64,000 bases of DNA, from assembly GCA_946965045.2 (NCBI GenBank), contig OX337235.1, positions 1,736,001 to 1,800,000 on the forward strand. The letters run 5' to 3'. The position numbers and the translations under genes were made by a program. The notes under the pieces were generated by a model. The model did no database searches and had not been told where the DNA came from. It saw only the letters and a program-made list of their open reading frames with translations. The stretch's first letter is position 1. Every line of letters begins with the position of its first letter. Shown one piece after another: positions 29,708 to 64,000 of the stretch. This DNA is from Epithemia pelagica (taxonomy: Eukaryota; Protista; Bacillariophyta).

Positions 29708-30487
29708 ATGGATTCTAACGAGCTTATCACTCCTGTACGACAGATCTATCGAGCCAAACTGCATCCCGGGCAGCCCGATACCCTGGTGCAGCAGGAACTG
29801 GTGCCGACGCCGAAGGCAGCCAACACATCGGTCAACATCTCCGTCGACAGTTCCAACAGCAACCCATTCGAGACTCCAACCCAGCCTCACGCTCCGATCC
29901 CTGCGCCGTTGCTTCGGCCCCCGAGTCCGCCTCGTCGGCTCGTCCCTTCTCGATCCCGTCGTACCACCCGGTTGATTGCTGATCATATCAAGTACTTCCG
30001 TCAACCAACTTGTTCGACCTTCGATCCCGAGATCATCCGTGGGGAGACCCAGATCGAACACCAGTTCCAATCGGTGACCCACATCGTCGACCAAGAAGAC
30101 ATTGACCGTCTGAACGACCAACTTCACCGTTCTCCGAGGCGTCGCCTCATCTTGGCCGCCCTCTCGGGCAACCCCATCCGTACTGTCCACCTCCGCTTCC
30201 TAACCTTCGAGCGCCCAACTGGATACTACAATACCATCCACGTCGTGAACGCGACGACTTGCCCTCTGCCTCCTAACGTTGTACGCCTAGATAACTACGT
30301 TGCCTACATCCACGAGGTCCATACCATCGAGGACCATCGTGCAACTATCTACCCTTTGCGTACCGAGGTCGAGAACCACCTGGCTGAAGGTGATACCCCT
30401 TCTTCTGTTGCTTGTGCTGCCCCATCTGAGCCTGGAAACGACTCTGATCATTCGGAAGAGAGTGAGGATTCGGAGACCGAAGCTTAA
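29708..30487 (+). CDS. Extra upstream ORF (ORF0) of copia A, 259 aa, unknown function
   Basis: Homologous at protein level to 47012-47767, with many third-position changes. Confidence 0.8.
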   Translation: MDSNELITPVRQIYRAKLHPGQPDTLVQQELVPTPKAANTSVNISVDSSNSNPFETPTQPHAPIPAPLLRPPSPPRRLVPSRSRRTTRLIADHIKYFRQPTCSTFDPEIIRGETQIEHQFQSVTHIVDQEDIDRLNDQLHRSPRRRLILAALSGNPIRTVHLRFLTFERPTGYYNTIHVVNATTCPLPPNVVRLDNYVAYIHEVHTIEDHRATIYPLRTEVENHLAEGDTPSSVACAAPSEPGNDSDHSEESEDSETEA

Positions 30488-30540
30488 TTACTCATAGTTA
30501 ACTCCCGTCCTCTCAAAACCTTTCCAAGACTTAAACTCAA

Positions 30541-30833
30541 CGCACATCCGGGTACCCTTGGTCGCACAACACGCCACACATTCCCGTCAAATCGCGAAAA
30601 TTCGGCGAAAATTTGTTGAAACTCGGCGAAAATTTGTCGGAATCAACGGAAATTTCCAGGAGTCGCACATCACAACACACATCCGGGTATTACATACGTG
30701 GTACATACGTGGCACACGTGGTACATCCGGGTTCACATCACATCACACATTAAATAAACCACATCACACCGCACATTAAATAAACATCGAACCAACCAAA
30801 TAACACCATGGATCCTCAATCACCCAAGACACC
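30541..30833 (+). repeat. 293-bp leader block shared with copia B (47815-48107)
   Basis: Only two mismatches between the copies; internal CGGCGAAAATTT, ACATCCGGGT and ACATTAAATAAAC repeats. Confidence 0.9.
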
Positions 30834-33800: not shown

Positions 33801-36495
33801 ATCACCCACCCATTCCGGTCGCACTCCTCTTGAGGCTCTCTCCGGACGCCCACCCGACATTACTCATCTCTTGTTCTTTCCTTTCTGGGATGAAGTTTAC
33901 TACCGTGTCGACCCCGCTGAACCCAATTCTGGTTCATATCCATCTTCTTCTGATGAGAAACTTGGCCACTGGGTTGGTTTTGCTCACAACGTTGGTGATT
34001 CTTTTACTTGGAAGATTCTCACCCAGGATAACCAGATCATCTACCGTTCTGCCGTTCGCCGTGTTGCATCCACTACACCTAACCTACGTGTGGATCGACC
34101 TTCAGGGGAGGATTCGTCTGAGAAGGATGACAATGATAAGCAAGCTGATACTGTCTTCATTCGCAGTGATAGTGAAGATCCATCCAAACCAATGCCCACG
34201 ATCGATTTTGACGACATGATAGGACGCACATTCCTATGCGACACAGAAGAAAATGGGGAGCGACACCGTGCACGTGTCATCAAACGAGTCATTGATCTTA
34301 ATGAAGAAGCAACGAAACAGGAAGAACGTGTCAAGTACATCTACCGAAAGACAAATTCTGATGTTGATGAGATGATATCCTATAATCAACTCATGGAGTA
34401 TATCGAACGAGATAACCAAGCTCAAACCTCTGGAGATAATCTTTTCAGGTTCAGGGATGTCATTGCCCATCAAGGCCCACTGAACACAACTGATCCAGAT
34501 TACAAGGGGAGCAAATATAATTTGCTTGTTGATTGGGAAACTGGGGAGACTACCTATGAACCTTTATCACTCATCGCCAATGATGATCCGATCACTGTAG
34601 CAATTTATGGAAAGAAACATGGTTTACTCAACGAACCTGGATGGAAGCATTTGAAACGTTATGTCAAAACAAGCAAACGTCTCATTCGAGCAGCCAAGCA
34701 GTCAAGGATTAAACAAGTTCACCATTCCGTCAAGTATAAGTTTGGATTTCAAGTACCACGCAATTATGAGGAAGCTGTCGCTCTTGATAAACAACATGGC
34801 AACACAAAGTGGCAGGATGCAACAGAATTAGAATTGTCACAGATCCAGTCCTACAAGACATTCAAGGATTTTGGGAAAGCCATCTTCATTAAAGGGAAAG
34901 TATCCAATGCACCTGAAGGATATCATAAGATACGTGTACATCTTGTCTTTGACGTAAAACATGATGGACGACATAAAGCAAGACTTGTCGCAGATGGACA
35001 TCTCACAAAAGAACCTGTTGAGACAATCTATTCAGGTGTTGTTTCCATTCGCAACCTCCGCATTGCCTTATTCCTGGGTACTTTGAATGACTTGGAAATA
35101 TGGGGAGCAGATATTGGAAATGCATATCTGGAAGCCTTGACAGGGGAGAAAATTTTCATTGTCGCAGGACCTGAATTCAAGGAATTAGAAGGTCACATCC
35201 TGATTATATACAAGGCACTTTATGGATTGAAGTCATCAGGCGCACGCTGGCATGATGTCTTATTCGATGTTTTGACAGACATGGGATTTTCACCAAGCAA
35301 AGCAGATCCGGATATCTGGATGAGGAAAGCACCTGGAGAAGACTGTTACGAATACATTGCCGTATACGTTGATGACTTAGCCATTATTTCTACTGATCCT
35401 GGGAATATCTGCAAGATCCTGAAGGAGAAATACAACTTCAAACTCAAAGGAGATGGACCTATTGATTTCCACTTGGGATGTTGTTACACCAAGGATTCTG
35501 ATGGAACATTAGTAGCAGATCCAAGACGCTACATTGGTAAGATGATGGACACTTTCGAACGAATCTTCAAGGAGAAACCCAAGAAAGCCAAAACACCTCT
35601 TATTGGTGGAGACCATCCTGAATTGGATGATTCTGAACTCCTTGATGAAGAAGGTACTAGCTATTTCCAAACTCTGATTGGACAACTCCAATGGGTGATC
35701 ACTATTGGTCGTTTCGACGTCTTCACCGCTACAATGACGCTATCACGCTTTCGTGCTGCTCCGAGGAAAGGACATCTTGATAGAGCCAAGCGTATCTATG
35801 GATACCTTGCACATCTCCCAGAAGGCGCAATCAGATTTAGGATTGGAGAGCCCGATTATTCAAGTCTTCCTACCCAAGAATTTGATTGGACTCGCACTGT
35901 CTATCCGAATGCAAGTGAACGTATTCCTGAAGACTGCCCAACACCTCTTGGCCGCTATGTTACCACAACTCATTATGTTGATGCCAATCTCATGCATGAC
36001 ATAGTCACTGGTAAATCCGTCACTGCTGTTCTACATTTGTTGAACGGAACACCTATTGACTGGTACAGCAAGAGACAGAGCACGGTGGAAACTGCTACCT
36101 ATGGATCCGAGTTTGTGGCTGCAAGGACAGCAATAGATCAGATTACAGAATTACGACATTCTCTCCGCTACCTTGGAGTACCTATCCGAGAGCGAAGTTA
36201 CATGTACGGAGATAACAGATCTGTTGTGCTCAATGCAACCGTCCCTCATTCCATACTATCCAAGAGACACCATCTTCTGTCATACCACCGAGTTCGTGAA
36301 GCCATCGCAGCAAAGTATGTTGCATTCTACTGGAAAGATGGAAAGACCAACCCTGCCAATATCCTTAGCAAACATTGGGATTTCGTATCTATTTGGCCCA
36401 TGCTCAAGCCATTGTTGTTTTGGAAAGGAGAAGTTCAAGACCTCAACAAATCCAATGATGACAAGGCTGAAACGACGAGTTGTGGGGAGTGTTAG
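30808..36495 (+). CDS. Copia gag-PR-IN-RT-RNaseH polyprotein, 1895 aa
   Basis: Protease LIDRGANGG; integrase ATDSVF/ISDGG/NKAENRY; RT HKARLVADG, ADIGNAYL, LYGLKSSG, YVDDL; RNase H HYVDA, TYGSEF, GDNRSV. IN precedes RT, the copia order. Confidence 0.95.
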   Translation: MDPQSPKTPTTPKGEDNQDNVSDTDLFDHIIFTVCQFFTKERADYLMKWMKYHGFENITHVISYMQTNTEESMKELTQYKVNKQTHDLQGPTRQQIKLLAYWAIYKTNEIQDELSNSDWMNLTRKEFNTWRINTDFSKGPPSQVPVSPMKSPSSVKSVSTVTAASQSQQDLTAFRKGTKRDATAYEVFKDEQYYDSFWRVFKTTAKAQGLSNVLNFKYTPPHDDEYAEELFQEQQVFLYSVLVRIIQTDQGRAYVREHEHDEDARAVLQKLHSLHTESDLAKREVLRLTNYISNLRLDDTWRGTTRQFLLHFQEQLRLLDNLVTLSDRIPDHTRMTFLMQAVEKVPDLRRVKILDNVVNTKSGAKSLCYQSYFRLLLDAAYDHDQATQSSVHSRRRHVKQHESLYGQDTDADITSQDDMEYHVHNTTATSESPSSLSKVSLPRDLWFKLSEEDRKLIIEYNKMIQAPSSTTPRKVQTHALDIDPEPDPDPNQVASDDDSPGVVPEHPDDSDPVTQFINQAMTADINHPATDLTSVLSNAKSKTSKKVTFKTNMHKQAGHVPRYLFSRKSTLPGNQLIDRGANGGLAGSDMRILSKTGRHITIVGIDNHELTGLPVVTCAAKFETNDGPIVGIFNEYAYYGKGLSIHAPGQFEHFGLAVDERSVKVDGKQRITTLDGRAIPLHIKDGLAYIHSLGIPSDNDMDTLPQIIFTSPDTWDPGVLDHSYSPTPSDNDPDWKHVKTDGSMSNHPYDNYGKYTDRVVCNLNLLLDLPYDHGPDDAPFFSIYADAEGNDPTLHASVHRRYQEAYDWKKFRPFFGWQSEDVIADTFKHTTRNGSITFDHDTLKKHFKARNPVLNIPRRHEPVATDSVFSDTPAVDHGGKVAQIFVGRDTLVTDIYGIKSTKQFVNTLQDNIRFRGAMETLISDGGSSLISQKVKDILRTLLIGEYRSEPYHQHQNKAENRYQTVKRMTNALMNATGCPANTWLLCLEYVCDLLNHTSSPTHSGRTPLEALSGRPPDITHLLFFPFWDEVYYRVDPAEPNSGSYPSSSDEKLGHWVGFAHNVGDSFTWKILTQDNQIIYRSAVRRVASTTPNLRVDRPSGEDSSEKDDNDKQADTVFIRSDSEDPSKPMPTIDFDDMIGRTFLCDTEENGERHRARVIKRVIDLNEEATKQEERVKYIYRKTNSDVDEMISYNQLMEYIERDNQAQTSGDNLFRFRDVIAHQGPLNTTDPDYKGSKYNLLVDWETGETTYEPLSLIANDDPITVAIYGKKHGLLNEPGWKHLKRYVKTSKRLIRAAKQSRIKQVHHSVKYKFGFQVPRNYEEAVALDKQHGNTKWQDATELELSQIQSYKTFKDFGKAIFIKGKVSNAPEGYHKIRVHLVFDVKHDGRHKARLVADGHLTKEPVETIYSGVVSIRNLRIALFLGTLNDLEIWGADIGNAYLEALTGEKIFIVAGPEFKELEGHILIIYKALYGLKSSGARWHDVLFDVLTDMGFSPSKADPDIWMRKAPGEDCYEYIAVYVDDLAIISTDPGNICKILKEKYNFKLKGDGPIDFHLGCCYTKDSDGTLVADPRRYIGKMMDTFERIFKEKPKKAKTPLIGGDHPELDDSELLDEEGTSYFQTLIGQLQWVITIGRFDVFTATMTLSRFRAAPRKGHLDRAKRIYGYLAHLPEGAIRFRIGEPDYSSLPTQEFDWTRTVYPNASERIPEDCPTPLGRYVTTTHYVDANLMHDIVTGKSVTAVLHLLNGTPIDWYSKRQSTVETATYGSEFVAARTAIDQITELRHSLRYLGVPIRERSYMYGDNRSVVLNATVPHSILSKRHHLLSYHRVREAIAAKYVAFYWKDGKTNPANILSKHWDFVSIWPMLKPLLFWKGEVQDLNKSNDDKAETTSCGEC

Positions 36496-37272
36496 AATTC
36501 TCACCGTCTATGGTGGTTAGATTCTACATCTCATCGATTCCTCATGTCACATAGCCTCGTGCTATCGCATCATGCCATCTAGCTTCGAGCTATGTTCCCT
36601 AGCTTCGCGCTATATCGACCTATATTTCTTCGCAAATCATGAAAAGTGAGAATAGATTGACGAACTCACTCTCAAGACTAAACTGGGTCGTGCGGTATTA
36701 CAACGGACGTAAATTTGGCCGTTGCTCGGACATTATACTAACGCCCTAAGCGTACGCGCCCGAAATCATCGAGCGCGCCCAAGCGACATCCGAGCGCTGT
36801 CGGCATCTATCCGACCCAACGGTCTAAGTATCCCAAGCACGACACACAATCACGCGAGACCATATTTCCATTCCCACAATCTCCAAATTGTCAACAAGCT
36901 GCGCGCCATGAAAACAACTATGCCAACCCAAAGCAAGAGCTGTTGACCCTGTATATGTTATCCACCCACATATACATGTCATATACATCACATGAATCGA
37001 CTCCAACTATTCCAAACCTGTTGCCGCCAAGAACCTATGACACATGACCCTTGGCAGGACCGAACATTTCACGTAGACCTATCGTAGTAATCAACACACA
37101 ATCTAACAATATCACCATTTATCACATCCTCTTTTGTGTCCCGACTATCCTTCTGATAGACTTCGACTTGCTTGCTTCTCTGACCCTGAGAAGCTTGTAT
37201 CGGTTGGTGACCTACCTGATTGTCTGCTCTACCGAGCATCAATGTCCCTACGATTCAGAAAGAATTGTAACA
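36490..37272 (+). repeat. 3' LTR of copia A
   Basis: Follows the PPT GGGGAG, ends TGTAACA, then the AGTAC TSD. Confidence 0.95.
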
Positions 37273-39770: not shown

Positions 39771-40332
39771 TGTTAGGATTCTCACCGAAAACTAGGTGGC
39801 GAAACCTACAACTCATCGAATGATGCTAGTATTTTATGGCATCCGATGACATTTTCCTAAAAGTGAGAAAAGAATGTCGGCATGCTCGCGAAACTATAAA
39901 TTTGGCCACGGCATGCTCGCAGTGCACGCGTTATCGGCGACCGCTCGGATATTAACTATGGCCCAACACGTGCGCGCCCAAAACTATCAAGTGCGCGCCT
40001 CTACTATCCGAGTACGCGCATCCACGATTCGACCTAACGGTCTATGTAATCAAAGCACGAATCACGATCACGCGAGACCATATCTCTGTTCCCACAAATC
40101 CAAGAATGCAAACAGCAACGCGCCCAGGACAAGACTTATACCACGACAAAGCAAGAGCTGTTGCATCCCATACATGTTATCCATCACCCTATACATTCAA
40201 TATACACCAATGCCGGTCTACTCCAACCAGTGAGGACCTATCACATCAGATCCATGGCCGTATACAAGAGCCAGGACTTCGGCACCATCAACCACCTTAG
40301 TTAGTAATCTTCTCACAATCATTAATATCATC
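39771..40332 (+). repeat. 5' LTR of copia B, left part
   Basis: Matches the first 562 bp of 53758-54515 (one mismatch noticed). Confidence 0.95.
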
Positions 40333-40676
40333 CAATACGAGCTAACGTCTATAACCGTTTTTGCAGAACACGTGCCTCCAGCCCCTTTTTCTCACGCCAG
40401 CCTCAAGTTCAGTCCACCCGGCGCGAATATCTACAAAAAACCTCGACACCGAAATGACTAAAACTTCATTAAATAAAATATCTTAGTGACATCGTACCAC
40501 CACTCCAATTCTCCCCATTTTCTCCCAGTCTTGCAAACTCGGAAGCGTTGCTGCACCGAGTTGCCACCGAGTTGCCACCGAGATCAACCATGATCCATTG
40601 GCTGGATATAGACGAGACCAATGACTTCCTCCACGACAATCAAACCAAGAACCTGTAATCTACACATTCATCAAGC

Positions 40677-42251
40677 ATGGCTTTCCGATACCCTCCTGAA
40701 ATCAACTCTCCTCCCGTCTATGTGGATAGCATAGACGACAATCTTCGCGTCGGTAGCTTTGTACACATCAAACTGAAGGGGCAATCTGATGGTACAACAA
40801 CAATCGCCCGAATCCATGCCCGTCTCGGACCAACAGGAATGAGGTTTGTTCTATACCCGCCGTTATTCCCTCACAACAACCGACAACATCCCACTCACCC
40901 TAGTTTACCGAAGCATCATCACCGCAAGATCCTCCTGAACATTGGCTCTCGCAACACCGAACTCTACGAATCAGAAGTTGATTACGATGTCCCCTATAAT
41001 GCAAGTGCCATTATCCTTCACCCCGCCTTTGTATTTTCTATCGAAGAGTTCAAAGAACCCAAGAACTCATGGGCTCATGGGCTTAAAAACGTATTTTTTG
41101 TACGTTTTCGATGCCCCCAGAAACACACCGGAATTCCTGAAGACTCTATTCACAGTCCTCTTTTGCCTCTCAAGTCATACGATCAGAAACTGTGTTTTCC
41201 CAATCAACACACTAAACGTGTTGTATTGGACGAGGCCATTCGTCCTCCACGTTGTTTTCATGAGTCTGCATTCGTAGGCCTGTTCATGATCCGGAAGAGC
41301 ATAACCAAAATTTTGAATAAAAGTAGTGGACAAGCCGAACTGCAAGAAGTTGTTGGAGCACAAATTGGCCTTGTACCCACCGAGACGTGGACTTACATAG
41401 TCCATATGTCTCGTTCTCAAGGCATCAAGGTCCACGTCACCAAAGGCAGTGCTTCGTACATGGACGTAGACCCTGATTTTACCCGTAAGAAAGTGAAAAT
41501 TCAGTACCCGACGACAATCATACGGTACCAAACGAATTCTGAGTTACAGTTTCTCCGAGAAATGCTCGGATTCTGTTCGACTTATGGCTCTACTGAAAAA
41601 AAGCCTACATTGTCCGACGGTGACCGTGGGTTGCCCCTCAAGCGTGAGCACAGGCTTACATTGGTCAATGGATCGGGCAATGAAAATAACGACCCCGACG
41701 CCCCTTTCAAGATCAGGACCCGACAGCAACGAGTGGATCTTTGCTGGTCTAACTTTCACTTTCGTGTGATTGTGGGATATCAGCAATACCACTATTCTGT
41801 TAACAGGGATGGGGAGTTGACGAATGAGCCTCCCACAGAACACTTAGCTTCAGTTCTTGGTGCTGAACCGAAAGACAAACACGTTCTCCGTTCTGACAAA
41901 TCCAAGAACCAATCTCCCAAACAAGCAAAACAAGCTGGACTCCTCAAGGATCCATCTCAAGGCGACAGCCCCGACACCTTCAACAAGATACTCCAAGCGT
42001 CTGATTCTGACTGCAGCTCTGATGAAGGCAACCCCAATGATCTCCCAAATATTCATATTGGTGACCAATTCACGGACGACGACAACGTTTATGAGGTCCT
42101 CTCTGTCCAAGTCAAAGCAAAGGAACCATTTGCTCTTGTACGTGTGGTTGGTGGTGACCTTTTCGATCATTCTCTGCCATTGGACAAACAGTACGTCCGT
42201 AAATGGGATGACCTGGAAGAAGTTATGATGCTTATCGAGGATTTCAACTAG
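40677..42251 (+). CDS. Partner gene of the RAG1-like element, 524 aa, unknown function
   Basis: Intact ORF inside the TIRs, convergent with the transposase (88 bp between stop codons). N-terminal LRVGSFVHI...IARIH is weakly BAH-like. Confidence 0.8.
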   Translation: MAFRYPPEINSPPVYVDSIDDNLRVGSFVHIKLKGQSDGTTTIARIHARLGPTGMRFVLYPPLFPHNNRQHPTHPSLPKHHHRKILLNIGSRNTELYESEVDYDVPYNASAIILHPAFVFSIEEFKEPKNSWAHGLKNVFFVRFRCPQKHTGIPEDSIHSPLLPLKSYDQKLCFPNQHTKRVVLDEAIRPPRCFHESAFVGLFMIRKSITKILNKSSGQAELQEVVGAQIGLVPTETWTYIVHMSRSQGIKVHVTKGSASYMDVDPDFTRKKVKIQYPTTIIRYQTNSELQFLREMLGFCSTYGSTEKKPTLSDGDRGLPLKREHRLTLVNGSGNENNDPDAPFKIRTRQQRVDLCWSNFHFRVIVGYQQYHYSVNRDGELTNEPPTEHLASVLGAEPKDKHVLRSDKSKNQSPKQAKQAGLLKDPSQGDSPDTFNKILQASDSDCSSDEGNPNDLPNIHIGDQFTDDDNVYEVLSVQVKAKEPFALVRVVGGDLFDHSLPLDKQYVRKWDDLEEVMMLIEDFN

Positions 42252-42339
42252 TAATATCCTTCCATCAGCATGATTCTTCTACGACTATCAGATTTTGCTG
42301 TGTTGTGCAAACGATGTACTAGCAATATTAGTCCTAGTC

Positions 42340-45300
42340 TTACTCGCTGTCGGAATCCTCTTTGTTTCCATCGTCGAAAGGTAAGTCTTCCTCTGAAACA
42401 AATTCATCGTAATCCAAATCCTCACTGTCTTCTTCACTGTCGTGGTCGGTCTCAGGGTCCCAATCACTACCACTGTCAGTTTCACATTCGGGATCGTCTC
42501 TGTTTTCCTTTTCCGTTTCACAATCATCATCACTGTCCTGTAAACTGTCCAAGAGACCGTCCCAGCTATCAATAACTTCGGCATCAGGACATACTTCTTC
42601 TTTTTCAATGTCCCAATCGTGCTCCATTAGTCCATGCTCTGACAATGGTCCCAACTTGCTCACTTCGTTGATTAGTTTTCCGTATTGGATAGTTCCCCCA
42701 TTTTCCTTTACCCATCCATCAAACTTCTCCACCTCATCAGTGCTTCGATTAGCATAAGACTCCTTGATTTGCTCGTCAGTTGTTCCGGTCATGAAGACCA
42801 TACGCCGTTGCAACCAACGTGCAATCGATCTAAGACGACTCGATGTAGATTTTCCTGCGTTTACAGCTCCCCCTCTTTGGGTTCTGTTAAAATAAAACGA
42901 CTTAAATAAGTGATTAAAGGCTGGACACAGAACAACAAAATGAGACGACACTCCAAAATCCAATGGTACTGTCGCTGGCAAAGAACTTACCCTCCCATCC
43001 TTGTTGAGAATGGGCCCACAAGTTCCTCCACCGGTTCAAATATTCCATCAGGTGACCACTACCCAACATGTGGGCGTAGTTCGTCACCCCCTCCTCACCA
43101 TGCAACGTTAGCCAGTCCCTGAAGAAGTAATCAACTTGTCGTTGGAATGAGAATATCTCTCTCTGCTTCATGTCATGGCGGACGTTGACTTTTTTCAGGG
43201 CCAAACGGTAGTGTCCAATACATCGTTGCCACAACTCGCGTCTCACCTCGTCCGATACACACAAAGCAAGGAGAATCTCAAACTTCGCCAGGACCTTCCG
43301 GATTCGGACGTTGTCCATGCAAATAGTGGCAACCTTTTTCTTCTTTTCATCGTACGGCATTTTCCAGTGAGAAGGGAGAAGTTCACTTCCAAGTACGCGC
43401 TCACTCATATTTCTGTTGACTTCTCGTAGATAAGCCTGAATTCGCTTCTCTTGTGTATCACACTGGTTCGACATCCATAGGAAAGGTGTGGCACTTTCGG
43501 CGTTCTTGACGGTTGTAAGCCCTTCCTTAAGTACTAGCGTCAGAATCTTAAGACCCATCCGATTTTCAAGGTGTAAAAGACAGGGGATTGAGTCGAGCAT
43601 CAGCACCATTGCTGTACGTTTTCGAGATGTCTTGGCGTCCTGTAGACTCTCATAAGCCCTCCTGTATGACCACTCACGTTTATGCTGTTGCTTCAGGCGT
43701 ATTTGTCTATCCTCTAGACGCCCTGTCCCAGTGAGACGTCTGATCCTAAGATCATGTGTGACTGAACGAGAGTACTGTAGTCGTTGTTCCCTAGTCGCCA
43801 CGGACAGATCGAAATGAATCGATCTTAAACTGGACTTTTCGGCACTTGTCGGTGCGACACGTGGATCGTTGTCCACCCAAATTTCCGAAGTGTCGCGTAG
43901 AACCGATAAATCTGAACCGAGTTGGGGCATTGTCTGCTTGAATTTGTCCACTTCTTCCTGAAGTTCGACTAGGTTCTCTTCGGTACACATTGTTGTATGG
44001 TGGCATTTCCATTCTGGGTCGAGATCATGGCCCAACTGGATACATACCTTACAGTTTGTATGGTCAGTTGTTGTTGGTAAATGGAGGTTCCCACTTCTTA
44101 TGGTACATTTAGCGCACGGGAACGTGCATACCTTGGTCGCTCCACCCCGGCCCATCAACTTCCAATCACAAGACATATCACAGTTTGTCGTGCAGGTTAT
44201 CTTCTGAATTTTGAACTTGTTGGGTAAGACTGTACTACATGCCTCACGTATCTCCTTAAACATAGGCTCAAATGTATCTTCAACCACCCCAAGACTCTCC
44301 GGCATAGCTACACATGTTATAGGGAAAACTCCGTTCCTCGACTGCTGGTATGGGTTGCTTGGGTCGTTGAACTTGACCCCCCCCAGCGTGTGGGAGAGGT
44401 TCTTCGTGAATAGGGCCCCATCTAAACTTTGTGATATCTTACAGGAACGATACAATGCCTCTGTGTCAAGAATTTTCCCAGACCGAAGGAGATTGGTGAT
44501 AACATCCGCTGCACGGAACGAAAAACCTTCACTACCATTTTTCTTGTTTTTGATCATTACAAACGGACAAAGGGTGCGTCCATAAGCTTCTACCATCGCA
44601 GCGTACTCTTGAACGGAACTTGACGAGGGTATCAGTGTACGTTGGTTGGGAGTTCCATCTGTCTCTACATGTCGGAGGAGCTCGAGACCATGATAATTCA
44701 GCACACCTCCATGTTCGTCCATTGTCTTGAGTATCTTGTACGGAGTAAAAACATAATCCCTGACGTACTGCCGGAAGATGTTGTAGGTACACTGTTTCAA
44801 CTGCCCTCCGTGTATGTTCTCGTCAAGCATGAGCATTCCCAGTTCGTTGAAAAAATGCTGAGACGATTTGCTGGTGCTACATAAAGTTTTGGTTTTCTCG
44901 AGGATCAGGCTCCTAATGTGGTCCACTAGAATATCGCCATTTGCATCGGGAAAACATGATTTGGGTAGGCCTATTGCCTTGTCTTGTAGGTCGCAAATCT
45001 CCTTTCTAGCTTCTTCGAGTTGCTTCGTTGCATAGTTGTGCTGTCTTGTCTTTTGGTACATCTCTGCTGACAGCGTTTTGTTTCGATCTTTCGCTATAAA
45101 CAACTGACGCTGTAATTTATCAACTTGTCTTTGTAATGCAATGATCGTATCATTGTCATTTCGGGCAGGGGCTTGTGGTATTCTTGGTTCTATTGGATCA
45201 ATGGGTTCGTGAGGAGGTAAGGCTGGTGATGGTGGTGGTGCTTGGGTACAACTTGGTGTATTTGCGTCGGAAATATTGGAAAGGGAGTCGTCTTGAGAAC

Positions 45301-46189
45301 ATCTTGGAGGACATTCTTCGGATCTTGCTTGGGGAATGTCGTTGGTGAACACAACCTCTAAGGTATTCAGTGCTTCTTCGGGAAAATGGGCCAACAAGTC
45401 CTTGGTTGGAGCGTTGTCATGGTTCTTCGAGTCATCAACTACTCTATTATTCTTGTCTTCGCCGTGGTCTTCGTCATCCGAGACATATATATGGTCTGCG
45501 ATGACCTCAGGTTCGTACCGTGTTGAGGATTGGGCATTCGGAAAAGCTTTCGCGTGTGCATCGATGACACTATTGAAAGTCTGAGTTTGCTTGCTTCTTG
45601 AATGAGTGTTTCGCTGTTGTTTAGCAGGTTGAAGGCGCCGTCTTCTTCTCTTCTTCTTCTGGTACTTGGGCGGTGGTGGTACAACGGTGCGAATGTCCGT
45701 GGGTTCGAGAAGGTGAGTGTGCTTTGCGATGCAAGTAAATGGTCCTCGGCGTCGCGTCCGATTCAACTTGCGATTGGGTTCGGCGCGTTCTATGTCGTCT
45801 GCTCTTTTACATTGTCCACAGAAGAAAAACTCAGCACCCCATTCTTTTTGTCTTTCTATTCCAAATACAGAGCAGGGTTTGTATTTTCGATTGGCAAACT
45901 GGCGAGCAATGCGAGACACTCGGTTGAGTTCTACCACAGAGTCTTCAATCGTTGTCTCGAGGTTTCGTCTTGTGGAACGAGTTCTCTTATTGGGACTCGC
46001 AGCAGATAGGGGAGGAGGATCTAGCAGACGCTTTGTCTTCGCAATTCTTGTGGTTGCTTTTTGTTTTGTTATGATCACAGCTTGAGTGACGGAAGGTGAA
46101 CAGGGTTGGCAGATTCTGCCTTCGTTCGGTGGGGTGGGAGGAGGATTTCTTCTACCTCCTCTCTTGCATTGGGAACGGGTTGTGGGCAT
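42340..46189 (-). CDS. RAG1/Transib-like DDE transposase, about 1259 aa; exons 46189-42991 and 42920-42340
   Basis: SQSLDGA (D1), NCDMS (D2), FPCAKC, IPCLLHLE, NYAHMLGSGH. A 70-bp GTAAGT...TCCAG intron (42990-42921) restores SQQGWEAFNHLFKSF in frame. Confidence 0.8.
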
Positions 46190-46776
46190 GGTGGTATCCA
46201 AAGGTAATTGAAGTGGATGATGGTGTGTATAGATAAGAAGGTATTACTCCAGAAGCGTTGATGAAGGAGGACGTCCTGGACAGAGCAATGTTTCTCGTCC
46301 CATTATTGCGTCCTTCATTCTCTTTGAAAAAGGAGACTAAAGTGCGAGTGTGTTAGAAAGACTGTATTCATTGTTATATTAGTGTTAGCGCGCCGAGCGA
46401 GTCGATGTGCGTGACACATTTTGTGAACGACTAGTTTTTGGAACGATAATGAGTCTCTGTCAATAAGTGCATTTGTGTGGGCATTATGGATCCGGTAGCT
46501 CGAGACTAAGCATTGGCAACTCCTCTTGGATAGTCAACGGATGGGTGCCGAGTCTTAGGCACGAGCCAACGGATGTATTGGATGCGTTGAAACCGATGCA
46601 ATCCTATGTATTTGGTAGATTTTGGAAATTTGCTTCCGACGTGATCGAGGGTGAAATTATATTTAACAAATGAGTTTCTTACAGTTTTTTCTATAGTGGA
46701 TCTGGATGTTTCTGAGGGAGGAGCGTAGGCAATGAGTTGGGCCGGCGATGACGGTTATGAGCGTTTGCTCGTATTG

Positions 46777-46973
46777 CATTTTAACACTCATCTTAAGACT
46801 AACCTCTTATCAGTGGACCGACTGCCCCCACCCACGGCGGACTTCGGCTTGCAACTCTTCTCTGACCCGTGGAGGATTGTTGTATCGGTTGGTGATTCGA
46901 TTGTCGGCTCAGCGAGCCTTTTACCTATCCTAACTATCTGTCTAACCCCTGTTGAATCGAGAGAAGTTTATCA
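46777..46973 (+). repeat. 5' LTR of copia B, right part
   Basis: Matches the last 197 bp of 53758-54515 (one mismatch noticed); ends TTTATCA. Confidence 0.95.
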
Positions 46974-46986
46974 GATTAACAGTCTC
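46974..46986 (+). promoter_or_regulatory. Primer-binding site (tRNA-Asn anticodon-arm type)
   Basis: GATTAACAGTCTC directly after the LTR, identical to copia A. Confidence 0.7.
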
Positions 46987-47011
46987 ATCGTTTATTTCCG
47001 AGAAGCTTTCG

Positions 47012-47767
47012 ATGTCTCACGACGATTCCAACCTCTCTATTCGACACATCTTTCATTCCTTCCAACAAAGCGGGGAGGAACTCCATCCACCCGTGTCCCA
47101 TCCGGGCGAGCCCTTGGTTGAAACTCCGAAACAGACCCCGACTCAGGCCAGTGCTCCGAATCCCTTCCAGACCCCGGACCAAGTGGTCCAGCCTCCTTCG
47201 ATCCCGACTCAACCTTCGACTCCGCCTCGCCGTTTGAACCCTACTCGCACCCGACGTACGAGCCGTCTTCTTACTGCGCATATCCGACACTTCCGCGAGC
47301 CGACTGAGTCGACTACCGACCCCGACGTGATCCGTTCCACAACCGAACGCGAGATCGATTTCCAGTCCGTCCAACCCGTGACTGACCTTGAGGACATCCA
47401 ACGACTTCTCGACCTCTTGAACCAGTGCTCGAGACGCCGTTTCATTGTCCAAGCCCTGTTGGGCAACCCTGTGGAACCCATCCGTATTCGATTCATCTCC
47501 TTTGAACGTCCAACCAACTACTTCCACACCATCTGGATCGTCAACTCGACGACGAATCCGCTACCTACCCCGACTACTCGTCTCGACGAGTACGTCTCCT
47601 TTGTTCACGAGATCCATCTCTGCCAGGATTTCCGTGCGACTATCTACCCTCTCTTCACTCAACACGTGAACCACTTGTTGGAAGACGACGACGTTGAAGA
47701 ACTAGCCACTACAGTGACCGATTCCGCATCTCGTCTTCAGTACCGAGCCGAAAGTGACCAAGAGTAA
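47012..47767 (+). CDS. Extra upstream ORF (ORF0) of copia B, 251 aa
   Basis: ATG at 47012; homologous to 29708-30487. Confidence 0.8.
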   Translation: MSHDDSNLSIRHIFHSFQQSGEELHPPVSHPGEPLVETPKQTPTQASAPNPFQTPDQVVQPPSIPTQPSTPPRRLNPTRTRRTSRLLTAHIRHFREPTESTTDPDVIRSTTEREIDFQSVQPVTDLEDIQRLLDLLNQCSRRRFIVQALLGNPVEPIRIRFISFERPTNYFHTIWIVNSTTNPLPTPTTRLDEYVSFVHEIHLCQDFRATIYPLFTQHVNHLLEDDDVEELATTVTDSASRLQYRAESDQE

Positions 47768-48081
47768 GTAACTTTACGTAGTTTCTACACCAAACCAGAC
47801 AGAAGACCGAGTTCCGCACATCCGGGTACCCTTGGTCGCACAACACGCCACACATTCCCGTCAAATCGCGAAAATTCGGCGAAAATTTGTTGAAACTCGG
47901 CGAAAATTTGTCGGAATCAACGGAAATTTCCAGGAGTCGCACATCACAACACACATCCGGGTATCATATACGTGGTACATACGTGGCACACGTGGTACAT
48001 CCGGGTTCACATCACATCACACATTAAATAAACCACATCACACCGCACATTAAATAAACATCGAACCAACCAAATAACACC

Positions 48082-51000
48082 ATGGATCCTCAATCACCCA
48101 AGACACCGTTTACTCCTTCTGAGGACAAGTCAAGTCATATAACCAATCAAGATCTCTTCGACCATATAACTAAAGGCATCTTTGGTTGTAATGATGAACG
48201 AGCCCAATCACTTCAAAAGTGGATGCGACATCATGGTTTTGAACATATCCTTCATGTCCTCGACCATGTTGCAACTGATCCCGAGGAGACACTCAAGGAT
48301 CTCATGCAATACAAGGTTGGAAAACAAGTCAACGACCTACAGACAAGTACAAGATTACAACTCAAACTAATGGCATATTGGTTACTACAACAACGGCAAC
48401 TCCAACATGGAAAACTACCCCGTGCTACATGGATGAACCTCACGAGGGACCAATATGACGATTGGAGGATCAACACCGACTTTACCAAGTCTGGTATGAA
48501 CCAAGACCCAGTTTCTCCTCTGAAATCACCTGCACACTCCGTATCATCCCGATCTCCCACTACATCCTCTACAACATCTCAATCCATGTTAGATCTCTCT
48601 GCTTTCAAGAAAGGAACCAAAAGAGATGCAACAGCATTTGAATCATTCAAAGACGAACGATATTTTGATTCGTTTTGGCGTGTATTCAAATCAACTGCGA
48701 AAGCACAAGGATTGTCGAATGTTCTTGATTTCGATTACAAGGTACCCAAGGATGACGAATGCGCAGAGTTACTTTTCCGAGAACAACAAGTCTTTGTCTA
48801 TTCTGTACTTGTACGTATTATCCAAACCGACCAAGGAAGAGCATATGTTCGAGAACATGAACATGATGAAGATGCAAGAGCCGTCTTGAAGAAACTCCAT
48901 GTTCTACACACTGAATCTGATCTAGCTAAGCGAGAAGTGTTACGCCTAACAAGCTACATTTCGAATCTTCGACTGGATGACTCTTGGCGTGGTACAACTC
49001 GTCAGTTTCTCCTACATTTTCAAGAACAGCTACGACTTCTGGATAACCTTGTACCACTGTCGGATCGTATCCATGACCATACAAGGATGACCTTCCTTAT
49101 GCAAGCTGTTGAAAAGGTACCTGATTTAAGACGAGTCAAGATCTTGGATAACGTTGTCAACACAAAATCTGGAGCCAAGTCTCTCTGTTATCAATCATAT
49201 TTCCGCCTGCTTCTTGATGCTGCTTTCGGCCATGACCAAGCTACCCGAACTTCTGCGTCTAACCGCCGTCGTCATGTAAAGCAACATGAATTTCAGTTGG
49301 ATGAACCTTTTGAACCAGTGGAGTCCCCTGACTACCAGATCAACAACACGAATATCCAATCCAAAAAGTCCCCAACTTCGTCGAAAATCAGCCTTCCAAG
49401 AGATGTATGGTTTAAACTCTCTGAAGAGGATCGGCAAATCATTGTCGACTTCAATAAATCCGTCCAAGATTCCCCGACAACTCCACGCAAGGTCCAAACA
49501 CATTCTCTTGACATTGATCCTGAACCAGACCCTGATCCTGATGCCAACAACATTGGTGATACCCATCAAGATGCACCAGAACAAGATCCATTCGATACAT
49601 CCTCTGATCCGGTTACCCAGTTCGTACACCAGGCTATTGCATCGACAGATATCAATCATCCAGCATCTGACCTCAGCAACATCTTGTCATCTTCTACGAC
49701 AAAATCAAGTCCTAAAGTCAAGTTCAAGTCTTCTGCTGATCACAAGCAAAAGGTTCATATGTCACGATATCTATTCTCCCGCAAATCCACCTTTTCTGGT
49801 AATCAACTCATCGATCGAGGTGCCAATGGAGGCCTTGCAGGATCTGACATGCGTATCCTTGCCAAAACCGGACGTCATATTACCATCGTAGGTATTGACA
49901 ATCATGAATTGACTGGCCTTCCAGTTGTTACCTGTGCTGCCAAGTTTGATACAAGTGATGGACCCATTATTGGTATCTTCAATGAGTATGCCCACTATGG
50001 AAAGGGTTTATCTATCCATGCCCCAGCGCAATTTGAACATTTCGGCCTATCTGTCGACGAACGATCCGTTAAGGTTGATGGCAAACAACGCATTACTACC
50101 CTTGATGGACGCGCATTGCCCTTACGAATCAAGGATGGCCTTGCATACATTCAATCTCTGGGAATCCCTTCTAATGACGATATGGGTAAATATCCGCATA
50201 TTGTGTTCACTTCACCCCATATCTGGGATCCTTCTGTACTTGACCATACCCATCCAGACCCCCATCAAGACCCTGCACCGAACTGGACATCTGTGGAGAC
50301 TGATGGTAGTATGGAAACGTATCCCTATGACCAATATGGGGAGTATACCGATTGCGTTGTATGCACTTTGAATCTCCTCCTTGATCTCCCATATGATCAT
50401 GGCCCCGATACACCTTCCTTCTTTTCCATCTATGCTGATCAAGATGGCAACGACCCCACACTTCATGCGTCTGTCCACAAACTCTACAAGGAACAATACG
50501 ACTGGAAGAAATTTCGCCCGTTCTTTGGGTGGCAATCGGAAGACGTAATCGCCGATACGTTCAAGCATACAACTCATCATGGACACATTTCCTTTGACCA
50601 GGATACCTTGAAGAAACACTTTAAGGCCCGGAATCCTATCCTTAACCTCCCACGACGGCATGAACCCGTTGCCACTGACTCCATCTTCTCCGACACCCCG
50701 GCTGTTAACCATGGTGGCAAGATTGCTCAGATTTTTGTTGGTCGTGATACTTTGGTTACTGACATTTATGGTATCAAGTCTACCAAGCAATTCGTCAATA
50801 CCCTCCAGGATAACATTCGTACACGTGGTGTCATGGAGACTTTGATCAGTGATGGTAGTTCGTCACTTATTTCCCACAAGGTCAAGGATATTCTTCGCAC
50901 CCTTCTGATTGGTGAATACCGTTCCGAGCCCTATCATCAACACCAGAACAAAGCTGAGAACCGCTATCAGACCGTTAAGCGTATGACCAATGCTATCATG

Positions 51001-53763
51001 AATGCATCTGGTTGCCCTGCTTCTGCATGGTTACTTTGTTTAGAATATGTGTGTGACCTCCTCAATCACACTTCCTCTCCCACCCACTCTGGCCGCACCC
51101 CTCTTGAGGCTCTTACCGGTACCCCACCCGACATTACCCATCTCCTTTTCTTTCCTTTCTGGGATGAGGTCTACTATCGTGTCGACCCTTCTGAACCTAC
51201 CTCCGGTTCTTACCCTTCGTCTCCCGACGAGAAGATTGGCCACTGGGTTGGTTTTGCCCACAATGTTGGTGATGCCTTTACTTGGAAGATCCTCACTGCC
51301 GACAACGTCATCATCTACCGTTCCGCTGTCCGTCGCGTTGCCTCCACTACCCCCAACCTTTGTGTGGATATCTCTTCAGGGGAGGAGTCGCCGCATAAAC
51401 CCACTGACAAGCAAGGTGACACTGTCTTTATTCGTAGCAGAAGTGAAGACCCATCCACACCTATGCCAACAATTGACTACGACGATTTAGTTGGACGCAC
51501 ATTCCTTTGTGACATTGAAGAAAATGGGGAGCGCCACCGAGCACGAGTAATCAAACGAGTTGTCGACCTGGAACAAGATGCAACCAAACAAGAAGATCGA
51601 CTCAAATATATCTTTCGCAAGTCTAACTCCAATGTTGATGAGATGATCTCCTACAACCAGCTCATGGAATACATTGAAAGGGATAATCAAGCCCAAACGA
51701 CAGGGGATAGTCTCTTCCGATTCAGAGACGTTATTGCACACCAAGGACCTTTGAACTCAAGCGACCCAGACTATAAAGGGAGTAAATATAATGTCCTTGT
51801 TGATTGGGAGACTGGGGAGACGACATACAAACCTCTATCTCTTATTGCAAATGATGACCCCATCACAGTCGCCATCTATGCCAAGAAAAATGGTTTGCTG
51901 GATCTACCTGGATGGAAACATCTCAAGCGATACGTCAAGACAAGCAAAAGACTCATTCGAGCAGCTAAACAATCCAGGATCAAACAAGTTCGTCGTTCTA
52001 TCAAGTACAAGTTTGGTTTCCAAGTACCTCGCACCTATGAAGAAGCAGTGGAACTAGACAAGCAATTTGGGAACACGAAATGGCAAGACGCAACAGAATT
52101 GGAACTCTCACAGATCCAATCGTATAACACTTTCAAGGACAATGGAAAAGCCAAGCTCATTAATGGAAAATTGGCCAATGCACCAGAAGGATATCATAAG
52201 ATAAGAGTACATCTGGTCTTTGATGTCAAGCATGACGGAAGGCACAAGGCACGACTTGTCGCAGATGGACATCTCACCAAGGAACCCGTTGAGACCATCT
52301 ATTCAGGGGTTGTCTCCATTCGCAACCTTCGCATTGCCATATTTCTTGGAACCATGAACGACATGGAAATATGGGGAGCAGATATTGGGAACGCATACCT
52401 AGAAGCATTGACAGGAGAGAAGATTTTCATCATTGCAGGACCAGAGTTCAAGGAGTTAGAAGGACATATCTTGATCATCTACAAGGCATTATATGGTCTC
52501 AAATCCTCAGGTGCTCGCTGGCATGACAAACTGTTTGATGTTCTCATTGATATGGGATTTTCTCCAAGCAAGGCTGACCCTGATATTTGGATGAAGAAGG
52601 CTCCTGGAGAAGACTGTTATGAATATATCGCTGTATATGTTGATGACTTAGCTATCGTTGCCATGGACCCTGAAGCTGTCTGCAAGATCTTTACAGAAAA
52701 ATACAACTTCAAACTCAAAGGAGTCGGACCTATCGAGTATCACTTGGGGTGTCGTTATACCAAAGATCCAGACGGTACACTTGTGTCTGACCCACGAAGG
52801 TACATCGAGAAGATGATGGATACCTATGAACGATTGTTCAATGAGAAACCCAAGAAAGCAAAGCCGCCAGTCATTGCTAACGATCATCCTGAACTCGATG
52901 ACTCTGAGCTCTTAGATGAAGAAGGGACCCAGCATTTCCAGACTCTTATTGGACAACTGCAATGGCTAATTACCATTGGCCGTTTTGATGTCTTTCCTGC
53001 TACCATGACTCTATCAAGGTTCAGAGCTGCTCCAAGGATTGGTCATTTGAAGCGAGCTAAGCGCATCTATGGATACCTCATGTCATTTCCTGATGGGTCT
53101 ATCAGATTCCGCACTGGGGAGCCAGATTTATCAGCTTTACCTATCCAAGAATACGATTGGAGTCGTACCGTATACATGGACGCCAAGGAACGTATCCCTG
53201 AGGACTGTCCAACCCCACTTGGGCGTTTTGTGACAACTATACATTATGTCGACGCAAATCTCATGCATGATATGGTTACTGGGAAAGCAGTTACAGCCAT
53301 CCTGCATTTTGTAAATGGTACACCCGAGGACTGGTACAGTAAGCGACAAGCCACAGTGGAGACAGCCACGTATGGATCTGAATTTGTTGCCGCAAGGACT
53401 GCAGTTGATCAGATCACGGAGCTACGCCTTACACTCCAATACTTGGGAGTCCCTCTACGAGAGAAGAGTTATATGTTTGGAGATAACCGCTCTGTCGTTA
53501 TCAATAGCACCGCACCACACTCAATCATCTCCAAGAGGCACCATCTCCTATCCTATCACCGAGTCCGTGAAGCTATCGCTGCAAAGTACGTCGCATTCTA
53601 CTGGAAAGATGGAAAGACAAACCCAGCCGATATCCTCAGTAAACATTGGGAATTCGCCGCAGTTTGGCCCATGCTCAGATCTTTGTTATTCTGGAGAGGA
53701 AAAATCCAGGAAAGTGATGAGGGAATTGACAATCCTCATTCGACGAATTGTGGGGAGTGTTAG
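48082..53763 (+). CDS. Copia gag-PR-IN-RT-RNaseH polyprotein, 1893 aa
   Basis: Same domain motifs as copy A (DRGANGG, ATDSIF, NKAENRY, YVDDL, NPADILSK). Confidence 0.95.
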   Translation: MDPQSPKTPFTPSEDKSSHITNQDLFDHITKGIFGCNDERAQSLQKWMRHHGFEHILHVLDHVATDPEETLKDLMQYKVGKQVNDLQTSTRLQLKLMAYWLLQQRQLQHGKLPRATWMNLTRDQYDDWRINTDFTKSGMNQDPVSPLKSPAHSVSSRSPTTSSTTSQSMLDLSAFKKGTKRDATAFESFKDERYFDSFWRVFKSTAKAQGLSNVLDFDYKVPKDDECAELLFREQQVFVYSVLVRIIQTDQGRAYVREHEHDEDARAVLKKLHVLHTESDLAKREVLRLTSYISNLRLDDSWRGTTRQFLLHFQEQLRLLDNLVPLSDRIHDHTRMTFLMQAVEKVPDLRRVKILDNVVNTKSGAKSLCYQSYFRLLLDAAFGHDQATRTSASNRRRHVKQHEFQLDEPFEPVESPDYQINNTNIQSKKSPTSSKISLPRDVWFKLSEEDRQIIVDFNKSVQDSPTTPRKVQTHSLDIDPEPDPDPDANNIGDTHQDAPEQDPFDTSSDPVTQFVHQAIASTDINHPASDLSNILSSSTTKSSPKVKFKSSADHKQKVHMSRYLFSRKSTFSGNQLIDRGANGGLAGSDMRILAKTGRHITIVGIDNHELTGLPVVTCAAKFDTSDGPIIGIFNEYAHYGKGLSIHAPAQFEHFGLSVDERSVKVDGKQRITTLDGRALPLRIKDGLAYIQSLGIPSNDDMGKYPHIVFTSPHIWDPSVLDHTHPDPHQDPAPNWTSVETDGSMETYPYDQYGEYTDCVVCTLNLLLDLPYDHGPDTPSFFSIYADQDGNDPTLHASVHKLYKEQYDWKKFRPFFGWQSEDVIADTFKHTTHHGHISFDQDTLKKHFKARNPILNLPRRHEPVATDSIFSDTPAVNHGGKIAQIFVGRDTLVTDIYGIKSTKQFVNTLQDNIRTRGVMETLISDGSSSLISHKVKDILRTLLIGEYRSEPYHQHQNKAENRYQTVKRMTNAIMNASGCPASAWLLCLEYVCDLLNHTSSPTHSGRTPLEALTGTPPDITHLLFFPFWDEVYYRVDPSEPTSGSYPSSPDEKIGHWVGFAHNVGDAFTWKILTADNVIIYRSAVRRVASTTPNLCVDISSGEESPHKPTDKQGDTVFIRSRSEDPSTPMPTIDYDDLVGRTFLCDIEENGERHRARVIKRVVDLEQDATKQEDRLKYIFRKSNSNVDEMISYNQLMEYIERDNQAQTTGDSLFRFRDVIAHQGPLNSSDPDYKGSKYNVLVDWETGETTYKPLSLIANDDPITVAIYAKKNGLLDLPGWKHLKRYVKTSKRLIRAAKQSRIKQVRRSIKYKFGFQVPRTYEEAVELDKQFGNTKWQDATELELSQIQSYNTFKDNGKAKLINGKLANAPEGYHKIRVHLVFDVKHDGRHKARLVADGHLTKEPVETIYSGVVSIRNLRIAIFLGTMNDMEIWGADIGNAYLEALTGEKIFIIAGPEFKELEGHILIIYKALYGLKSSGARWHDKLFDVLIDMGFSPSKADPDIWMKKAPGEDCYEYIAVYVDDLAIVAMDPEAVCKIFTEKYNFKLKGVGPIEYHLGCRYTKDPDGTLVSDPRRYIEKMMDTYERLFNEKPKKAKPPVIANDHPELDDSELLDEEGTQHFQTLIGQLQWLITIGRFDVFPATMTLSRFRAAPRIGHLKRAKRIYGYLMSFPDGSIRFRTGEPDLSALPIQEYDWSRTVYMDAKERIPEDCPTPLGRFVTTIHYVDANLMHDMVTGKAVTAILHFVNGTPEDWYSKRQATVETATYGSEFVAARTAVDQITELRLTLQYLGVPLREKSYMFGDNRSVVINSTAPHSIISKRHHLLSYHRVREAIAAKYVAFYWKDGKTNPADILSKHWEFAAVWPMLRSLLFWRGKIQESDEGIDNPHSTNCGEC

Positions 53764-54515
53764 GATTCTCACCGAAAACTAGGTGGCGAAACCTACAACT
53801 CATCGAATGATGCTAGTATTTTATGGCATCCGATGACATTTTCCTAAAAGTGAGAAAAGAATGTCGGCATGCTCGCGAAACTATAAATTTGGCCACGGCA
53901 TGCTCGCAGTGCACGCGTTATCGGCGACCGCTCGGATATTAACTATGGCCCAACACGTGCGCGCCCAAAACTATCAAGTGCGCGCCTCTACTATCCGAGT
54001 ACGCGCATCCACGATTCGACCTAACGGTCTATGTAATCAAAGCACGAATCACGATCACGCGAGACCATATCTCTGTTCCCACAAATCCAAGAATGCAAAC
54101 AGCAATGCGCCCAGGACAAGACTTATACCACGACAAAGCAAGAGCTGTTGCATCCCATACATGTTATCCATCACCCTATACATTCAATATACACCAATGC
54201 CGGTCTACTCCAACCAGTGAGGACCTATCACATCAGATCCATGGCCGTATACAAGAGCCAGGACTTCGGCACCATCAACCACCTTAGTTAGTAATCTTCT
54301 CACAATCATTAATATCATCATTTTAACACTCATCTTAAGACTAACCTCTTATCAGTGGACCGACTGCCCCCACCCACGGCGGACTTCGACTTGCAACTCT
54401 TCTCTGACCCGTGGAGGATTGTTGTATCGGTTGGTGATTCGATTGTCGGCTCAGCGAGCCTTTTACCTATCCTAACTATCTGTCTAACCCCTGTTGAATC
54501 GAGAGAAGTTTATCA
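53758..54515 (+). repeat. 3' LTR of copia B
   Basis: TGTTAGGATTC...GAAGTTTATCA, preceded by the PPT and followed by AACGC. Confidence 0.95.
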
Positions 54516-63999: not shown

Positions 64000-64000
64000 G

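Follow-up and report, generated by a model that had tools for sequence, protein, structure and literature searches.

RAG1 is the enzyme that assembles antibody genes. Its transposase relatives make up the CMCT clade, which unites EnSpm/CACTA, Mirage, Chapaev, Transib, Plavaka, ESTA, Lanisha and RAG1 itself, and whose hallmarks are C(2)C and H(3-4)H motifs, termini that are mostly CA..TG, and target site duplications (TSDs) of 2-5 bp; accessory genes are frequent in this clade, and HHpred sends its new member ESTA to RAG1 (PMC12730594). Transib-like genes are known from bacteria, fungi and plants, and a RAG1L-RAG2L transposon, which makes 5-bp TSDs, has been reported from the stramenopile (pelagophyte) alga Aureococcus (PMC9435367). 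The element compared here with these systems occupies positions 40333-46776 of a 64,000-bp stretch of DNA (the window) from the diatom Epithemia pelagica (assembly GCA_946965045.2, contig OX337235.1, positions 1,736,001 to 1,800,000), and is probably an autonomous cut-and-paste DNA transposon of a previously undescribed CMCT lineage, with a transposase gene and a second gene, ORF2, between its terminal inverted repeats (TIRs). It represents a new offshoot within an established group of transposons and is no relative of ProtoRAG.

The element sits within the 5′ long terminal repeat (LTR) of a copia retrotransposon. When its flanks were compared with the window by BLAST, the 758-bp LTR was recovered as two halves on either side of the element (39771-40332 and 46778-46973), and an intact 3′ partner was found at 53758-54515, which differs from the split 5′ LTR at 2 of 758 positions (0.26%). 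The inserted DNA consists of the 6444 bp of the element (40333-46776) plus a single extra C. The empty site in the 3′ LTR reads ...ATATCATC|ATTTTAAC, and the filled site in the 5′ LTR reads ...ATCATC[CAATACGAGC...GCTCGTATTG]CATTTT, with one base (C, at 40332 and 46777) doubled. The 5′ LTR alone is occupied by the element, and the insertion therefore postdates the integration of the copia, which is itself recent, its LTRs having diverged by 0.26%. The initial annotation, made from the sequence alone, had described a 6444-bp TIR element that split one copia LTR and had argued from an LTR difference of about two bases that it moved recently; the flank comparison and the empty site bore out both statements. 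The features at the insertion are as follows.

39771-40332, plus strand: left part of the host copia 5′ LTR, 99.8% identical to 53758-54319
40332, unstranded: left copy of the TSD, 1 bp (C), where the empty 3′ LTR has a single C
40333-40358, plus strand: left TIR, CAATACGAGCTAACGTCTATAACCGT, with an identical terminus in the copy on contig 2 (L013)
46751-46776, minus strand: right TIR, reverse complement CAATACGAGCAAACGCTCATAACCGT, which pairs with the left TIR
46777, unstranded: right copy of the TSD, 1 bp (C), from comparison with the empty site
46778-46973, plus strand: right part of the host copia 5′ LTR, 99.5% identical to 54320-54515

The host copia (39771-54515) is intact, with LTRs of the form TG...CA, a 5-bp TSD (AACGC) and one gag-pol open reading frame (ORF) of 1893 aa (48082-53763), which is separated from the 5′ LTR by about 1.1 kb that holds a 271-aa ORF (46952-47767). 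Another copy of its LTR, on contig 17 (L005:4693-4881), is empty at the insertion site and reads ATCACCATTTT versus ATCATCATTTT in the 3′ LTR of the window; because the length is unchanged, this difference is a substitution and not the footprint of an excision.

The TIRs are 26 bp long and imperfect (22 of 26 positions agree), and the ends CAATAC...GTATTG were present in every copy examined, with the consensus CAATAC(G/C)AGC. A genome search with the TIRs for further copies and empty sites, which had been proposed as a check, returned 21 occurrences of the word CAATAC(G/C)AGC(A/T)AACG versus one for a control; these words pair as the termini of eight elements of 6.1-6.5 kb. In nine of nine copies, drawn from two subfamilies, the base flanking the left end is the same as the base flanking the right end (c, a, t, a, c, t, a, a, t), for which the chance expectation is 4^-9. 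Because there is a true empty site and all nine copies match, the TSD is 1 bp. A distant member of the family on a metagenome contig (L031:2003-7963) has 21-bp TIRs, CAC(T/A)(T/A)CGAGCATCTAGGGGGG, whose CGAGC core is common with the TIR of the window. Neither CACTA termini nor subterminal repeat arrays were found in the ends of the window element.

The 60.5-Mb genome contains at least 70 matches to the transposase core (37-100% identity), mostly in open frames of 1000-1300 codons, and 88 matches to ORF2, which adjoin the transposase matches in convergent orientation. The copy on contig 2 is 98.6% identical across exactly 40333-46776. Between the window copy and a copy 92% identical to it, the ratio of nonsynonymous to synonymous divergence (dN/dS) of the transposase core is 0.055, which indicates strong purifying selection on the encoded core; for ORF2, dN is 0.20 and dS is saturated. 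The empty site, the TIRs and the intact genes uphold the earlier description of a two-gene TIR transposon that is intact and was mobile in the recent past. A profile built from ten copies of the genome, run exhaustively with hmmsearch, matched 2308 proteins at E-values up to 1e-3 and 283 at E-values up to 1e-30, and a word-indexed homolog search with a 31-sequence profile returned close relatives only. Most of the matches were metagenome contigs; the named relatives, from three cluster look-ups, were all diatoms (Seminavis robusta, a metagenome-assembled genome of Bacillariaceae, and Epithemia clementina). The family is apparently diatom-wide and recently active. Preferential targeting to repeats or heterochromatin was considered and found unsupported, the left flanks of four other copies being single-copy. 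No description of the family was found in the literature searched on Transib/RAG1 in diatoms or stramenopiles and on 1-bp TSDs.

The transposase is encoded on the minus strand, where an ORF of 1095 codons (46201-42914) runs just past the motif QQGWE, at which lies a splice donor, GTAAGT. The acceptor, CCAG, is found 70 nt further on and gives an in-phase junction (...QQGWE|AFNHLFK), and an intronless paralog (L022:4242-8132) reads QQGWEAFNSAFKSFYFNRTQRGG uninterrupted across the splice position, so that the 70-nt intron is confirmed by comparison of the two sequences. The predicted spliced product has 1263 aa from a TTG at 46201, or 1259 aa from the ATG at 46189. A search of the run index for this organism brought up DNA contigs of a single study and no RNA. 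In another paralog (L020:3917-7774) about 21 in-frame, stop-free codons stand where the intron would follow QQGWE; some subfamilies seem to keep the intron or to read through it, and others, such as that of the intronless paralog, seem to lack it. The length of 1259 aa and all motifs listed in the initial annotation were confirmed in the sequence. In the list, residues are counted from the ATG and invariance refers to an alignment of 31 homologs with identity down to 23%.

42991-46189, minus strand: transposase exon 1, starting at the ATG, with the N-terminal Cys-rich motif, a basic stretch, a coiled coil and the catalytic core
44420-44422, minus strand: first catalytic Asp, D1 (SLDG, D590), invariant, codon checked
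44177-44179, minus strand: second catalytic Asp, D2 (NCDMS, D671), invariant, codon checked
44105-44116, minus strand: CxxC (FPCAKC, C692/C695), invariant, codons checked
43997-44053, minus strand: second Cys/His cluster CKVC...CxH (C713, C716, C729, H731), with C716 and C729 invariant and C713 and H731 conserved in at least 90%
43052-43072, minus strand: HxxxxxH (NYAHMLGSGH, H1040/H1046), invariant, codons checked
42992-42994, minus strand: catalytic Glu (QQGWE, E1066), invariant, the final codon before the intron
42921-42990, minus strand: intron of 70 nt, phase 1, GTAAGT...CCAG, absent from the intronless paralog
42340-42920, minus strand: transposase exon 2, AFNHLFKSFYFNRTQRGG... followed by an acidic tail, with the stop codon at 42340-42342 (from the ORF list, the splice and the intronless paralog)

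Ten columns of the alignment are invariant, namely D590, D671, C692, C695, C716, C729, H873, H1040, H1046 and E1066, or, in the numbering of the core (whose residue 1 corresponds to ORF residue 430 when counting starts with the TTG, 46201), D165, D246, C267, C270, C291, C304, H448, H615, H621 and E641. The spacing from D2 to the Glu is 395 aa, in agreement with the earlier estimate of about 395. The CxxC lies 21 and 24 residues past D2, and the His pair 26 and 20 residues ahead of the Glu; in RAG1, C727/C730, the positional counterpart of C692/C695, lie 19 and 22 residues past D2, and H937/H942 25 and 20 residues ahead of E962. The CxxC/HxxxxxH pair is thus positioned as in the zinc site of RAG1. 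Upstream of the core there is a conserved Cys-rich motif, PCSVFG...FFFCxxC...FxC...H...PT (window 45700-45900; Cys pattern C-x17-C-x2-C...C-x5-H), followed by the basic run KKKRRRRR and then the coiled coil. The whole ORF, this motif included, has no Pfam match; a zinc finger that binds DNA, accompanied by a nuclear localisation signal, is the probable identity of this N-terminal region.

The fold of the core was modelled with AlphaFold2 (mean predicted local distance difference test, pLDDT, 68.5; predicted template-modelling score, pTM, 0.47). When the model was compared with the Protein Data Bank (PDB) by Foldseek, the best 42 matches were all RAG1 (top E-value 3e-5, probability 1.0), and VIA gave Z-scores of 12.1 for RAG1 (model residues 116-636 against mouse 532-957), 10.9 for BbRAGL of amphioxus and 8.8 for HzTransib. 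The next match, an unrelated helical protein, had a Z of 6.5, and Hermes scored below 4.6. VIA pairs model residue 636 with mouse RAG1 957, which would place E641 opposite E962 if the final five residues are ungapped. A search by features in the ESM Atlas ranked RAG1 clusters first (0.96; 187 of 256 features in common); with the RAG1 families excluded and the most divergent paralog as the query, the nearest clusters came from Cnidaria and Mucoromycota and were unnamed or tagged as DUF1280 (0.92-0.93), and CACTA-type Transposase_21 clusters reached only 0.85-0.86. A search by shape with the 641-residue model returned weak matches only, with Transposase_21 at low rank (template-modelling score, TM, 0.25). 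The structural check proposed in the initial annotation thus found RAG1, BbRAGL and HzTransib as the sole related matches, with low confidence around D1 and D2, and as a model-based prediction the RAG1-type fold of the core, an RNase H-fold DDE domain with the ZnC2/ZnH2 insertion also present in HzTransib, is well supported.

With the CMCT clade the diatom family has in common a DDE core, a C(2)C motif past the second Asp, a His pair ahead of the Glu, CA...TG termini, the structure-based resemblance to RAG1 and the presence of an extra gene, such genes being frequent in the clade. It differs from the clade in an additional conserved CxxC...CxH cluster and in a partner with a BAH fold (see below). 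Several observations weigh against the assignment. The TSD is 1 bp versus the 2-5 bp of the clade, and in the distant metagenomic member the flanking bases (g and a) differ, so that a 1-bp TSD is not evident there. The two His of the pair are spaced by 5 residues versus 3-4 in the clade. The model falls below a pLDDT of 50 at residues 164-175 and 244-268, exactly around D1 and D2, and therefore does not define the geometry of the triad; global TM-scores are low (0.25), and the alignments with a Z of about 12 have root-mean-square deviations (rmsd) of 12-15 Å. Searches of Pfam and of PDB chains with HMMER, whether started from the single protein, the 10-sequence profile, the 31-sequence profile or each of the 31 members by itself, returned no RAG1, Transib or CACTA match, and the family has no detectable similarity to the Pfam models of RAG1 or the CACTA transposase; at the level of sequence, a link to any reference transposase is lacking in these databases.

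One resemblance to consider within the clade is that to Transib, RAG1 and RAG1L. The element could be a true Transib/RAG-like member that forms a deep stramenopile branch of the group ancestral to RAG, with Transib and RAG1 as nearer kin than CACTA, Mirage or Chapaev, a placement that is possible but doubtful. The predicted fold matches the mouse RAG1 532-957 stretch (Z 8.8-12.1), in an alignment that takes in everything between the pre-RNase H domain and ZnH2; D, D, CxxC, HxnH and E follow one another in like order and at like distances, including the 20 residues from His to Glu, the same as in RAG1; and the ranking of the feature search, in which RAG1 and Transib-type clusters scored 0.93-0.96 versus 0.85-0.86 for Transposase_21, leans weakly toward this side. 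A RAGL transposon is also known in another stramenopile, that of Aureococcus, whose publication means that an occurrence outside animals is no novelty in itself (PMC9435367). However, none of the 31 members matches the Pfam RAG1 models (PF26100, PF26025, PF26101 and PF26104), even at E-values up to 10, whereas the mutual sequence similarity of RAGL proteins is clear, at 26-37% identity (PMC9435367). Transib and RAGL transposons duplicate 5 bp of their target and end in a heptamer-like CAC (CACxxTG) within asymmetric TIRs of the 12/23 type; the diatom element makes a 1-bp TSD, its window ends share only the first CA, and a RAG2L gene is lacking. Among the matches, solved structures of CMCT proteins are limited to RAG1 and Transib; the match to RAG1 therefore places the family in CMCT and not in any one of its branches, and the structure searches do not separate this placement from one on the CACTA/Mirage side; Z is larger for RAG1 than for HzTransib, yet the model is weak.

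Could the element instead be a divergent CACTA/Mirage-type (CMC) transposon, whose stagger, once 2-3 bp, narrowed to 1 bp and whose likeness to RAG1 goes no further than that of the whole clade? A second gene is often present in CMC elements, long insertions between D2 and the Glu occur in them (395 aa here versus about 254 in RAG1), the distant metagenomic member ends in CAC(T/A)(T/A)CGAGC, and Transposase_21 clusters do appear, at low rank, in both the feature and the shape searches. Mirage makes 2-bp TSDs, and its termini are CA...TG (PMC12730594). The hallmarks of EnSpm/CACTA, namely a Transposase_21 domain, CACTA termini and a 3-bp TSD, were nevertheless not found in the diatom element: Pfam Transposase_21 (PF02992) matches 0 of 31 members, feature scores are below those of the RAG1 clusters, and the ends have neither CACTA nor subterminal repeat arrays. 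Such an origin is accordingly judged quite unlikely. Chapaev has an N-terminal Chapa zinc finger of the RAG1 N-terminal type and a 3-bp TSD; the diatom family has the conserved N-terminal Cys-rich motif described above, and its TSD differs, at 1 bp. Very short or absent target duplications are made by other DDE transposases too, as in Mirage and ISL2EU, with TSDs of 2 bp, and in Spy, with none; the last two are members of the PHIS group, which is unrelated in fold details, and to our knowledge none of the three has been described with a 1-bp TSD. The proposal in the initial annotation of a possibly undescribed family of the RAG/Transib/Chapaev lineage therefore stands in part: the fold is predicted to be of the RAG1 type and no description was found, while the TSD is 1 bp and not 5, and there is no RAG1 or Transib profile match. 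A separate CMCT lineage is the placement preferred here.

The second gene, ORF2, is encoded tail-to-tail with the transposase, with 88 bp separating one stop codon from the other.

40677-42251, plus strand: ORF2, 524 aa, with a BAH-fold N-terminus, a beta-rich middle with no fold assigned, an acidic/Ser disordered linker and a C-terminal beta-barrel

A model built from 20 homologs (pLDDT 77, pTM 0.69) has a BAH fold at aa 10-177, a disordered acidic/Ser linker at aa 400-455 and a small beta-barrel at aa 455-524. The best 50 Foldseek matches were all BAH domains (SHL, EBS, polybromo, BAHCC1, ORC1, Sir3, DNMT1; E-value 6e-5, probability 1.0). An unbiased VIA search aligned the model with the BAH domain of ORC1b at a Z of 10.5 (rmsd 2.7 Å over 119 residues), its first 19 matches all being BAH, and the first match of the ESM Atlas shape search was a BAH cluster. 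No sequence match to Pfam BAH (PF01426) was found; the model nonetheless identifies the N-terminus as a predicted BAH fold. The aromatic residues F118, F120 and W132 are conserved in ORF2. The C-terminal part (aa 455-524) resembles a small Tudor/SH3/KOW-like barrel, weakly (Z about 5). Neither a Kelch propeller nor a PHD finger was among the best 50 matches in either solved-structure search, in which the middle (aa 190-400) was barely covered.

The initial annotation had likened the layout to the RAG1L/RAG2L pair of ProtoRAG. The convergent orientation between TIRs is indeed the same, and RAG2, like ORF2, is a second protein encoded tail-to-tail with its transposase; the likeness ends with the partner. 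RAG2 has a six-bladed Kelch propeller and a PHD finger (RAG2L a Kelch propeller with or without the PHD finger), which are unrelated in fold to the BAH beta-barrel of ORF2. As modelled, with a BAH fold and no Kelch or PHD match, ORF2 is therefore not RAG2-like. The histone mark read by the PHD finger of RAG2 is H3 trimethylated at lysine 4 (H3K4me3); methylated histone tails are also what many BAH domains recognise.

TET/JBP genes ride on fungal transposons, and ORF2 might likewise be a passenger, dispensable for transposition and aiding the element otherwise, e.g., by counteracting silencing or steering it. The known role of BAH domains is to read chromatin and not to assist DNA cleavage, and, as the single-copy left flanks of the four other copies illustrate, repeats are not obviously targeted. 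Accessory genes unrelated to the cutting chemistry are also common in the clade (PMC12730594). A complex prediction for transposase core residues 100-641 with ORF2 residues 1-400 gave a score of 0.00, which lends no support to an interaction and, being no verdict, counts neither for nor against binding. A required function, however, fits better with the conservation of the gene: ORF2 is intact and convergent in essentially every full-length copy, next to transposases 37-100% identical to that of the window, and in other diatoms, so that a mere passenger is rather improbable. Even where the transposases of different subfamilies share only 37-57% identity, both genes remain intact and linked. 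A metagenomic contig of the Bacillariaceae type holds a homologous convergent partner (hhalign probability 96.7%, E-value 4e-10) beside a transposase with only 27% identity. Seminavis robusta has the same convergent two-gene layout, and there the similarity of the partner to ORF2 was not significant (hhalign E-value 0.053).

Elsewhere in the window, a second copia (29123-36994) has an ORF of 1895 aa (30808-36495) and LTR-like ends (29123-29393 and 36724-36994) that are about 74% identical to the LTR of the first copia. Its 286-bp leader (30541-30826) and positions 47815-48100 in the first copia share 99.3% identity, the remainder having diverged. The end of the window (60000-64000) is a GC-rich block (53-58% GC) with a strong positive GC skew and a minus-strand ORF of 1193 aa (60145-63726).

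By analogy with the related systems, the transposase would bind the TIRs and cut at the CA ends through its DDE site, probably with a hairpin formed on the flanks, the route taken by RAG, Transib and hAT, after which the 3′-OH ends would join target strands staggered by one nucleotide. We know of no eukaryotic DDE superfamily for which joining with a single-base offset has been described. The BAH protein may be an accessory factor that tethers the transposase to chromatin, or it may be regulatory; if it does link the element to chromatin, it would be a functional analogue of RAG2, not a homologue. A tentative extension of this scheme, which we regard as possible rather than probable, is that RAG1-type transposases gained a chromatin-reading partner twice independently (RAG2 in RAGL, and the BAH and barrel protein in diatoms), and that the diatom enzyme, which joins with a single-base offset, branches deeply as the sister of Transib/RAG.

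If this were so, and if the BAH protein were needed for cutting or for the choice of target, the division of labour between RAG1 and RAG2 would be recurrent and not a one-off. The diatom family offers a natural experiment on why RAG-type enzymes work beside a chromatin-reading partner. For annotation, about 2300 related public proteins are without a domain name, and classifiers that use TSD length and Pfam will miss the family. With near-identical intact copies in the genome, the element is also a candidate genetic tool for diatoms. The 1-bp TSD, the CAATAC ends and the BAH partner go beyond what has been described for the clade and fit no named family, and, placed as above, the family would add a large lineage to the transposon group that is ancestral to the V(D)J recombinase.

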